NCBI RefSeq assembly: GCF_000400465.1
Contig: NW_008806287.1
Location: 270,001-302,000, forward strand
Reading direction: 5' to 3'
From: Wallemia ichthyophaga EXF-994
Lineage: Eukaryota > Fungi > Basidiomycota
DNA length: 32,000 bases
Below, in pieces: positions 25,401-28,241 of this stretch; the first letter of the stretch is position 1, and every line of letters starts with the position of its first letter. Under the pieces are notes generated by a model. The model was not told where the DNA came from. It searched no databases and was given only the letters and a program-made list of their open reading frames with translations. The position numbers and the translations under genes were made by a program.

Positions 25401-28241
25401 GGAGGATATTATGGTGCACTACGATGGTACAGTGAGGAATTCTCTCGGTGACGTTCTTCAATTTGCCTACGGTGAAGATGGTATGGATGGATCTGTTATG
25501 GAAAAGCAGCACTTTGTTGGTATGTCTGCTAGCGATGAGGAGTTTGACCGCAAGTTCCGCATTGATCTCACCGACCCATCTCGTGACTTTAAGCCTGGCT
25601 CATTGCGTGTTGGGTTGGAATCCACCGAAGGCTTGCAAGCCAAGTTGGATATGGAGTGGAGGCAGCTCGTCGATGATCGCGTAATGCTTCGAGACTTCAT
25701 CTTTAAATTCCGTCCAGGCGATTCTACACTCCCATTGCCACTGAACATACGTCGTACTATCCAAAACGCGCAGCAGATCTTCCGTATTGACCGCCGTCAA
25801 CCCTCAGACCTGGATCCAGGGTCAGTGGTGGATGAGGTGCATGCACTTTGCCGTAGACTAGTTGTCATTCGCGGTAAGGATGTGTTGAGTCAGGAGGCTC
25901 AGAACAATGCCACAATGTTGTTCGCTATTCTCCTCAGGTCTTCGTTGGCTGTCAGACTCATCATTGAGGAGCACCGTCTTAATAGAGAAGCGTTCGATTG
26001 GGTTATTGGTGAGATAGAGACTAGATTTAATCAGTCTATCGTAGCACCGGGTGAAATGTGTGGTACATTGGCAGCACAGTCGATTGGTGAACCTGCGACG
26101 CAGATGACACTTAATACATTCCACTATGCTGGTGTTTCATCGAAGAATGTCACACTTGGTGTACCTCGTCTAAAGGAAATTATTAACGTAGCTACAAATA
26201 TCAAAACTCCATCTCTAACTGTATTCCTCGATGAGATGACTTCAAGGGATGTTGTTGCTGTGAAGAATGTACAGGCAGAGTTAGAACACACGACACTCAA
26301 GACTATCACAGCAGCTACGGAAATTATTTACGACCCAGATCCTACAACAACAATCGTAGATGAGGATAGAGATTTCGTCGAGGCATACTTTGCCATTCCA
26401 GACGAAGAGGTAGCTGCGAACATTGACAAGCAGTCGCCATGGCTACTGCGGTTGGAGTTGGATAGAGCCAAGATGTTAGACAAACGTCTTGAGATGAACT
26501 TTGTTGCTGGGAAGATCGCTTCGCTGTTCCAAAACGACTTATTCGTCATCTATTCGGAAGATTCCGCAGAGAAGCTCATTATCCGTGCTAGAATAGTTGG
26601 AGATGATCCATCGACTAAGGAAGATGATGGTGTATCTGAGGATGTCTTCTTGAAGAAAATTGAGAACAACATGTTATCAAACATCTCATTGCGCGGTATA
26701 GAGGGTATAACGAGGGTGTTCATTGTCGAACGTAAGAAGGAGGTGATAGCTGAGGGTGGTAGATTTGAAAGACAGCAAGAATGGGTTCTTGAGACTGATG
26801 GTGTCAACCTCTCTGAAGTACTCCCAGTTAAGCATGTGGATGCTACGCGCACGTACTCGAACCACTGTCAAGAAATATTCGAGGTGCTTGGTATAGAAGC
26901 AGCGCGTAATGCGATTTTGAAGGAGTTGCGTAACGTCATTGAATTTGACGGTTCTTACGTCAACTACCGTCATCTGGCGCTATTGTGCGATCTGATGACT
27001 AACAGAGGAAGACTTATGGCTATTACGCGTCATGGTATTAACCGTGCAGACACGGGAGCATTGATGCGTTGTTCGTTTGAAGAAACAGTAGAAATTCTTC
27101 TCGAAGCAGCTGCAATTGGAGAGAAGGATGATTGTCATGGTATAGCTGAGAATGTTCTTCTTGGACAGATGGCACCAATGGGCACTGGAGCGTTTGATGT
27201 TACACTCGACATCGATATGCTCAAGGATGTAGTTATCGATGCTAAACTTCCAGCACATCGCCTTAATGCGCAGATGGCAGAGGGAGCGATGGTTATAGAT
27301 GAGCAGGGCAAGATGACGCCATATGCACATGGGAAGAATTCATACGAGGCGCAGATTATTGGAGATGATACAGCACTGTTCTCTCCAATCGCCGCATCAG
27401 GTTCAGATGAGTCGAGTAAGGAATACTTGGGATACGGTCAATCGCCATTGGTTACGGGAGGGGCAACTTCGCCAGGTTACTCACCATCGAGTCCTACATG
27501 GTCACCGACGAGCCCTGGATATGTGCCAGCGACCTCGCCAGCTGTCGGAGGAGCTGTGTCTCCTTGGGTACCACAGGGAGGAACCTCACCTGGGTATTCA
27601 CCTTCAAGTCCAATGGTTGGGATTAGCTCGCCTTCTTATAGTCCTAGCTCGCCAAAGTTCAGTCCATCTAGTCCGACTTACTCGCCTGCGTCGCCTAGCT
27701 ATAGTCCAACATCGCCGCGCTACAGCCCAGCTAGTCCGGCATACAGTCCATCTTCTCCCAAATGTAAGTTGATCTGGAAAGTAACTGAAGGAATAGAAGC
27801 TGACAAATTCGCAGACTCGCCAACATCGCCAAAGTACTCTCCAACATCACCACAGTACTCACCAACGTCACCACAATACTCACCGACATCACCTAAATGT
27901 GAGAGGAAAGTTTAAGACATGGAGCGATTGCTAACGCAGCAGCAGATTCACCAGCATCACCGGCGTACAGTCCAGCCAGTCCAGGATGTGAGTTGAAAGA
28001 GATTGTAGATTGTAGAGATAGCTGACAAAAGACAGACTCACCTGCATCGCCTGCGTACTCGCCAGCGTCGCCAGCTTACTCACCGGCGTCACCAGCGTAT
28101 TCACCGGCGTCGCCTGCATATTCACCAGCGTCGCCTGCATACTCGCCAACGTCGCCAGGAGGAGCGACAGGGGTTAATGGGGAAACGAAACCAAGTTGGC
28201 AGACAGGCAACACGTCCTCAGGGCCAAGCTGGAAGACGTAA
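22484..28241 (+). CDS. RPB1: DNA-directed RNA polymerase II largest subunit; 10 introns
   Basis: [12 protein letters not shown]|[47 protein letters not shown], catalytic [46 protein letters not shown] and heptad CTD. Introns: 22519-22564, 22620-22668, 22776-22833, 22926-22974, 23046-23094, 23335-23388, 25083-25130, 27764-27814, 27899-27945, 27988-28035. Confidence 0.99.
27478..28160 (+). repeat. RPB1 CTD heptad repeats (18 contiguous after splicing plus about 3 proximal degenerate units)
   Basis: Contiguous run: [42 protein letters not shown] | [28 protein letters not shown] | [14 protein letters not shown] | (YSPASPA)x5 YSPTSPG. Confidence 0.95.

Follow-up and report, generated by a model that had tools for sequence, protein, structure and literature searches.

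The 32,000-nucleotide (nt) stretch of DNA analysed here (Wallemia ichthyophaga EXF-994, contig NW_008806287.1, positions 270,001 to 302,000 of the forward strand; hereafter the window, counted from its first letter) contains RPB1, the gene whose product carries the carboxy-terminal domain (CTD), the repetitive tail of RNA polymerase II. The distal CTD is encoded by a tandem array of seven-residue repeats (heptads), and this array is interrupted by three short introns that all cut the codon of the first heptad residue, Tyr1, at the same nucleotide. The gene model, which we assembled manually from translations in three frames together with GT-AG sites, starts with the ATG at 22484, ends with the stop codon at 28240-28242, and comprises 11 exons and 10 introns encoding a product of 1752 amino acids. 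The features on which the argument depends are as follows, a slash in a split codon or flank marking the exon-intron boundary.

22484-28242, forward strand: RPB1 gene model
27478-28161, forward strand: CTD-coding region, delimited by translation and a heptad/codon table
27764-27814, forward strand: CTD intron 1 (gene intron 8), 51 nt, phase 1 in Tyr1 (T/AC), 5' site GTAAGT, branch site CTGAC at 27800-27804
27815-27898, forward strand: exon A, 84 nt, four heptads (YSPTSPK, YSPTSPQ, YSPTSPQ, YSPTSPK), with all Ser2 and Ser5 codons of the TCN type
27899-27945, forward strand: CTD intron 2 (gene intron 9), 47 nt, phase 1 in Tyr1 (T/AT), 5' site GTGAGA, branch site CTAAC at 27931-27935
27946-27987, forward strand: exon B, 42 nt, two heptads
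27988-28035, forward strand: CTD intron 3 (gene intron 10), 48 nt, phase 1 in Tyr1 (T/AC), 5' site GTGAGT, branch site CTGAC at 28022-28026
28036-28242, forward strand: last exon, with five copies of YSPASPA, one YSPTSPG and a 27-residue non-repeat tail ending in SGPSWKT, followed by the stop codon at 28240-28242

In the 1752-residue product, Pfam recognises Rpb1 domains 1-7 in canonical order (PF04997, PF00623, PF04983, PF05000, PF04998, PF04992 and PF04990), all far above the cut-offs, and the CTD repeat family PF05001 scores 65.7 bits. A full-length search gives 93% protein identity to RPB1 of W. hederae and 90% to that of W. mellicola; other fungal RPB1 proteins among the matches listed are 61-69% identical to the window protein at 88-100% coverage. 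The N-terminus of the model is the same as that of P0328, a W. mellicola model of RPB1 alone.

The CTD consists of a degenerate proximal part followed by 18 contiguous heptads, which begin at 27637 and are broken by the three introns. Tandem Repeats Finder detects arrays with a period of 21 within this region, at 27815-27893 and 28036-28156. All three CTD introns have GT-AG ends with a GTRAGN 5' site, a CAG 3' end and a branch site located 11-15 nt before the 3' end. Their flanks read CCAAAT/GTAAGTTGA...TTCGCAG/ACTCGC for intron 1, CTAAAT/GTGAGAGGA...CAGCAG/ATTCAC for intron 2 and CAGGAT/GTGAGTTGA...AGACAG/ACTCAC for intron 3. Excision of the three intervals yields an unbroken heptad array that runs on to the terminal SGPSWKT and the stop codon. 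If kept in the transcript, intron 2 causes a frameshift and intron 3 introduces an in-frame TGA; only intron 1 preserves the frame and is free of stop codons. An earlier interpretation of the letters alone (the sequence-only reading) had proposed the same three intervals, each in phase 1 within a Tyr1 codon, and its proposal is borne out by the splice sites, the frame and the full gene model. Translation likewise agrees with its account of the internal exons as 84 nt with four heptads and 42 nt with two, and the heptad table confirms that exon A contains four of the six Thr4-bearing heptads of the contiguous array.

If the three introns had been placed independently and uniformly along the repeat, they would share one of its 21 positions with p = 1/441, and the common register is therefore not a product of chance. 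Since all introns share one repeat nucleotide, every exon enclosed by two of them comprises an exact number of 21-nt repeats and has symmetric phases (1-1). The heptad-exact exons are consequently the result of the shared register and not a design feature. The sequence-only reading pointed out that the loss of one or both internal exons by skipping would delete complete heptads without disturbing the frame, and this arithmetic is right.

A comparison of CTD intron positions among relatives, which the sequence-only reading had already suggested, reveals the same three sites in W. hederae and W. mellicola and, as described below, in-register introns in other basidiomycetes. For the two Wallemia species, we took the genomic loci and mapped the annotated proteins back onto the DNA with an exact spliced mapper. 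Both carry three introns at the identical three sites, each in phase 1 of the Tyr1 codon, and these introns are already present in the public gene models of the related species. The intervals obtained by spliced mapping are given below (locus L001 for W. hederae and L002 for W. mellicola).

W. hederae L001 10863-10907; W. mellicola L002 10710-10755: orthologues of CTD intron 1
W. hederae L001 10992-11041; W. mellicola L002 10840-10888: orthologues of CTD intron 2
W. hederae L001 11105-11151; W. mellicola L002 10952-11000: orthologues of CTD intron 3

Exon A is 84 nt long and encodes the same four heptads in all three species, with a nucleotide identity of 82%. Between species, the CTD exons are 72-87% identical (exon B, which carries an insertion-deletion difference, set apart), whereas the introns reach only 44-57%, the level of random alignments; alignments of orthologous introns give z-scores of -1.5 to 2.1, no better than shuffled sequences across the three species. 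Because the positions are conserved while the sequence within them is unconstrained, the three introns are genuine and older than the split of the species. The serine codons tell a similar story at the level of single heptads. AGY and TCN codons do not interconvert by one synonymous step, and the family used at Ser2 and Ser5 is the same in every heptad across the three species, so the heptads correspond as one-to-one orthologues within a stable architecture.

The sequence-only reading also described the CTD introns as purine-rich, which is correct for the window: their purine fractions are 0.67, 0.68 and 0.71, compared with 0.37-0.47 in the other seven RPB1 introns (exact rank p = 1/120). In the orthologous introns, the values are 0.42-0.53 for W. 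hederae and 0.48, 0.49 and 0.65 for W. mellicola. The purine richness of the CTD introns is therefore species-specific and not conserved.

Several smaller observations concern the CTD introns themselves. The 3' end of intron 2 consists of three tandem CAG triplets at 27937-27945 (GCAGCAGCAG), the first of which starts 6 nt past the branch-site A. Splicing to the middle CAG would lengthen the exon by 3 nt in frame and replace Tyr1 with Ser-Asp; neither the W. hederae nor the W. mellicola orthologue of intron 2 has a tandem CAG acceptor. A GAAAG motif lies soon after the 5' splice site in all three introns, as GGAAAGT in introns 1 and 2 and as TGAAAGAGA in intron 3, and the latter 9-mer is shared with the orthologous W. 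mellicola intron 3. This motif could be a chance occurrence within purine-rich sequence. Retention of intron 1 would replace one Tyr with 18 other residues. We considered whether such in-frame retention is a conserved property and rejected it: the W. hederae orthologue contains an early TAA, and the W. mellicola orthologue, at 46 nt, causes a frameshift.

While the intron positions are fixed, the number of heptads is not. Exon B measures 42 nt in the window versus 63 nt in both relatives, the window being without the middle YSPTSPT, which makes this a heptad-exact insertion-deletion of 21 nt within the exon. The terminal YSPASPA copies in the last exon number five in the window, six in W. hederae and five in W. 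mellicola. Among W. mellicola strains, the annotated proteins P0328, P0337 and P0341 carry two, five or six YSPASPA copies in the last exon, i.e. a change of -3 or +1 heptads, with exon B kept. The RPB1 proteins of these strains differ in the number of terminal YSPASPA only; when the copy in exon B is counted in, the numbers become three, six or seven. As the strain comparison covers annotated proteins and not DNA, the difference is either a CTD length polymorphism or a collapse in short-read assembly. At the DNA level, a heptad is most closely related to others in the same exon, with matches of 86% and 83% in the two arrays reported by Tandem Repeats Finder. Thus, the variation in CTD length is genetic and intra-exonic, and leaves the intron register untouched.

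The serine codons further display a super-pattern of three heptads (63 nt), (AGY,TCN)(AGY,AGY)(TCN,TCN), within 27637-28035 of the window. One occurrence is in the proximal exon, and another spans exon B and the first part of the last exon; the pattern is clearest in the 63-nt exon B of the relatives and is kept in the three species. The super-pattern hints at old duplications of 63-nt blocks that contained no introns.

Introns that respect the heptad register are not confined to Wallemia. In RPB1 of Rhodotorula, Microbotryum, Auricularia, Coprinopsis, Lentinula and Calocera, also Basidiomycota, short GT-AG introns likewise recur at one position in the distal heptad array, and the exons are often 21, 42, 63 or 105 nt long. 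What differs is the register: phase 1 in Tyr1 in Wallemia, phase 2 in Ser2 in Rhodotorula, phase 0 between Pro3 and Thr4 in Microbotryum, and phase 1 in Ser2 or Ser5 in Agaricomycetes and Dacrymycetes. Rhodotorula graminis has seven CTD introns, all in phase 2 of Ser2, which delimit internal exons of 21, 21, 105, 42, 63 and 21 nt, and some pairs of these introns align above shuffled sequences (z = 4-5). A heptad-preserving GT-AG model of Microbotryum silenes-dioicae contains three phase 0 introns at Pro3^Thr4, with exons of 21 and 63 nt, together with one phase 1 intron in Ser2. Its introns, at 6077-6152, 6174-6250, 6314-6390 and 6449-6536 of locus L012, restore perfect heptads and the conserved end SSWQR; in the public model P0320, the distal CTD drops out of the heptad frame and the protein finishes with about 200 residues of non-CTD sequence (L012 6004-6673). 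Auricularia, Coprinopsis, Lentinula and Calocera have phase 1 CTD introns, mostly in Ser2 but also in Ser5. A 42-nt CTD exon is found in Auricularia and Coprinopsis and is split into 30 and 12 nt in Lentinula, and the CTD exons of Agaricomycetes are partly not heptad-exact (57, 81, 78, 30 and 12 nt). The phase 1 introns of Wallemia (Tyr1) and of Agaricomycetes (Ser2), which we compared as candidate homologues, lie exactly one codon apart, and both groups possess a 42-nt exon. Puccinia has many CTD introns at several positions, and the mapped RPB1 genes of Malassezia and Pneumocystis have no CTD introns; a Tulasnella model was mapped over its last 80 residues only and left out of the survey. 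CTD introns in phase with the repeat, together with heptad-exact exons, are thus general among basidiomycetes, with a register that depends on the lineage, and Wallemia is one more case. We found no description of the phase or register of CTD-coding introns in the searchable literature, which is not proof of absence.

We also examined the similarity of the introns themselves. The sequence-only reading noted that introns 1 and 3 have GTRAGTTGA and AGCTGACAAA in common and took this as a sign of duplication. Both words are indeed present in the two introns. However, RPB1 intron 5, which starts at 23046, a long way from the CTD, likewise begins with GTGAGTTGA, and the consensus for branch sites is CTGAC. 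Once the splice-site ends are removed, introns 1 and 3 align at z = 2.3 and rank 9 among 120 pairs drawn from 16 Wallemia introns, several pairs that cannot be paralogous scoring higher. Overall, the similarity is not clearly above background, and since the sequence-only reading itself had regarded a lack of similarity beyond splice signals as counting against a duplication origin, it does not serve as evidence for one. On the other side, AGCTGACAAA (10 nt) is the longest word common to any of the 120 pairs, four unrelated pairs sharing words of 9 nt. In a Monte Carlo simulation with splice signals and composition held constant, p is 0.023 for AGCTGACAAA alone and 0.0012 when TGA after GTRAGT is included; both values are post hoc and refer to one of three possible pairs.

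The words shared by introns 1 and 3 of the window are not shared by the W. hederae or W. mellicola orthologues. Because the sites predate speciation and the orthologous introns have lost all similarity, the motifs common to introns 1 and 3 today are not relics of a founding duplication; they are at best the outcome of chance, splice-signal context or a local conversion event. By the same token, the similarity test is powerless with respect to an old duplication, as saturation has reached even the orthologous introns; the flanking heptads differ in type. The proposal of the sequence-only reading that the CTD grew by duplication of intron-plus-heptad units therefore stands in part. A common origin of the repeat-phased structure is reasonable, the register being kept in W. 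hederae and W. mellicola, but the length changes take place inside exons. An origin of the introns from heptad-coding sequence, either intronised or inverted, was also tested and rejected, as no similarity was seen in either orientation except for a weak z of 2.6 for intron 2 in the sense orientation.

An alternative without any duplication of an intron-bearing block is that the introns were gained independently, the 21-nt repeat offering the same insertion or proto-splice site in every heptad. The heptads that flank the three introns differ in type (SSPK/YSPTSPK, TSPK/YSPASPA and ASPG/YSPASPA), and the introns are not detectably similar, both of which favour separate insertions. The phase 1 introns of Agaricomycetes, which fall in both Ser2 and Ser5 codons within the internally repeated T/CNCC, look like the product of a sequence preference. 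However, the exon ends in the window (AAAT/ and GGAT/ upstream, /AC downstream) are unlike the usual AG/G proto-splice site, and three hits on one of 21 positions would retain the low probability given above unless the insertion specificity were very strong. In Rhodotorula, moreover, seven of seven introns in one register, exons of 21 nt and the intron pairs with z = 4-5 fit unit duplication better. We therefore regard independent gains as unlikely. Recent gene conversion between the regions of introns 1 and 3 in the window species would explain the shared GTRAGTTGA and AGCTGACAAA as well as the common purine richness. In its favour are the record length of AGCTGACAAA among the 120 pairs, the joint Monte Carlo probability (0.0012 per pair), and a 46-nt stretch of exon end and intron start that is 72% identical between the two sites. 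Yet 72% is usual for heptad-coding repeats anyway, words of 9 nt occur in the four unrelated pairs, the middles of introns 1 and 3 do not align, and the test was picked once the motifs were already known. In addition, the species-conserved AGY/TCN pattern is intact in the flanking heptads, which implies that no conversion tract reached into the exons. Such a conversion seems rather improbable to us.

A functional alternative, put forward by the sequence-only reading, is that splicing tunes the length and Thr4 content of the CTD. Exons A and B would then be alternative cassettes whose regulated skipping, for example under salt, produces Rpb1 with four, two or six fewer heptads and less Thr4. 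Their symmetric phases (1-1) and lengths in multiples of 21 nt would keep every skipped product in frame, four of the six Thr4 heptads reside in exon A, the 5' site of intron 2 (GTGAGA) is weaker, and none of the three CTD introns has a pyrimidine tract. In-frame skipping is, however, an automatic result of the shared register. All ten RPB1 introns are 46-58 nt long, which fits intron definition, and skipping would need lariats of 137-272 nt. The sequences that flank regulated cassette exons are usually conserved; here, the flanking introns are at the random-alignment level between species. The size of exon B differs as well, 42 nt here versus 63 nt in two relatives, and the in-frame retention of intron 1 is not conserved.

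Published expression data point in the same direction. RNA sequencing of W. ichthyophaga in 10% and 30% NaCl detected alternatively spliced transcripts of 730 genes, mostly through intron retention, with one exon-skipping event genome-wide (PMC3849046), and this single event, together with the short introns, the unconserved flanks and the variable exon B, leaves the tuning proposal unsupported and disfavoured. In the collections that we searched (a protein search for transcript-derived fragments, and metagenome contigs), no spliced Wallemia transcript was found, skipped or not; a scan of metagenome contigs for the spliced junction of donor 1, with a pattern that fits the constitutive join and both skipped joins, returned 13 matches, all of which were chance occurrences or CTDs of unrelated eukaryotes. 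Regulated skipping of exons A and B under salt is a very improbable explanation, and it seems just as far-fetched that cassette use of these exons, or in-frame retention of intron 1, yields Rpb1 isoforms differing in CTD length and Thr4 from one gene.

We favour the explanation that the three CTD introns are constitutive, ancient and heptad-phased, a by-product of the evolution of the repeat array, and we assign it a probability of roughly 0.85 as a whole. On this explanation, they would be ordinary short spliceosomal introns that are constitutively removed, with recognition presumably occurring across the intron through the GTRAGN 5' site, the CTRAC branch site 11-15 nt from the 3' end and the YAG 3' site. 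Their lengths of 47-51 nt are comparable with the 46-58 nt of the other RPB1 introns, and the published mean intron length of W. ichthyophaga is 61 nt (PMC3849046). Before the radiation of Wallemia, a block of the tandem array that already bore an intron would have been duplicated, after which the intron sequences may have diverged to saturation. Since then, as the length comparisons show, whole heptads have come and gone inside exons by slippage or unequal exchange. The protein outcome would be one Rpb1 isoform with about 26 heptad-like units. From the evidence above, we infer that the shared register is best explained by the old duplication of an intron-bearing block.

Some points weigh against this explanation. 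The constitutive splicing of the CTD introns is an inference. As the intron sequences are saturated, an old duplication and repeated insertion at one preferred site cannot be told apart. The words shared by introns 1 and 3 may reflect a weak signal of homogenisation in the lineage of the window. Finally, the purine richness of the window introns (0.67-0.71) has no explanation in these terms.

Two known systems resemble what we describe. Fibrillar collagen genes contain exons of 54 bp (also 45, 99 and 108 bp), a pattern traditionally taken to mean that the gene grew as an exon-intron unit was duplicated. As in the Wallemia CTD, their exons are whole multiples of the repeat and all start at one codon position. 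In collagen, however, this is an intact Gly codon (phase 0) in a 9-bp repeat, and the introns are long and subject to exon definition, whereas the Wallemia CTD has phase 1 junctions, a 21-nt repeat, introns of about 50 nt and growth that seems to lie mostly inside exons. In yeast RPB1, the CTD changes its length by in-frame gain and loss of heptads in the DNA. Yeast is thus similar to Wallemia in that the heptad number shifts in whole units by recombination or slippage; unlike Wallemia, where the changes are confined to single exons and leave the intron register untouched, budding-yeast RPB1 is without CTD introns.

The remaining features of the locus concern the upstream introns of RPB1, its neighbours and the public gene models. 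Upstream of the CTD, the hand-built model contains seven introns on the forward strand.

22519-22564, forward strand: RPB1 intron 1
22620-22668, forward strand: RPB1 intron 2
22776-22833, forward strand: RPB1 intron 3
22926-22974, forward strand: RPB1 intron 4
23046-23094, forward strand: RPB1 intron 5
23335-23388, forward strand: RPB1 intron 6
25083-25130, forward strand: RPB1 intron 7

A gene for a MAP65/Ase1 microtubule-associated protein (Pfam PF03999) adjoins RPB1 upstream at 19901-22227 on the forward strand; its product ends in AAGEEEDW, with the stop codon at 22225-22227. The public models of W. hederae (P0208, 2495 residues) and of some W. mellicola (P0209, 2396 residues) fuse MAP65/Ase1 to RPB1 by splicing over the MAP65 stop and the RPB1 start, and other W. 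mellicola strains have the two modelled apart, as proteins of 704 and 1749 residues. The fusion looks like an annotation artefact. P0208 also reads the orthologue of RPB1 intron 7 (25083-25130 in the window) as coding, whereas GSKGSFINISQMS stands at this place in the window and in W. mellicola; the intron was probably retained by mistake in the annotation.

At the other end of the gene, within 28239-28335, the RPB1 stop codon is overlapped by a GTAAGT (ACG TAA GTG). The stop is followed by a GA-rich tract of about 55 nt (ggaggcagaagaggggagaagaaagagaaagacgataaaagagaaag) and then by three tandem copies of gtgtaaa/tgtaaag in the 3' untranslated region (here the slash separates two forms of the repeat). 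Right after the stop, the sequences of W. hederae and W. mellicola differ from that of the window. Scans of the window with Rfam models and for tRNA genes gave no match. The guanine-plus-cytosine (GC) content is 48.8% for the window, 52.7% for the W. hederae locus and 41.3% for the W. mellicola locus; the published value for W. ichthyophaga coding sequences is 47.5% (PMC3849046).

RPB1 is a housekeeping gene, and the finding of in-register introns in its CTD matters little in itself. It has a practical side, in that CTD introns mislead automatic annotation, as seen in the mis-spliced Microbotryum model and in the fused or intron-retaining Wallemia models. Regulated splicing of the CTD, if true, would be a new layer of RNA polymerase II regulation, a post-transcriptional tuning of the tail in a halophilic fungus; we know of no eukaryote in which the tail is tuned by splicing in this manner, and the present evidence is against it. 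For the basidiomycetes as a group, the heptad-locked introns are slow-changing markers within a homogenised repeat array, with a register that differs from lineage to lineage. Together with the AGY/TCN pattern of the serine codons, they could serve to reconstruct the growth, shrinkage and turnover of CTD arrays.

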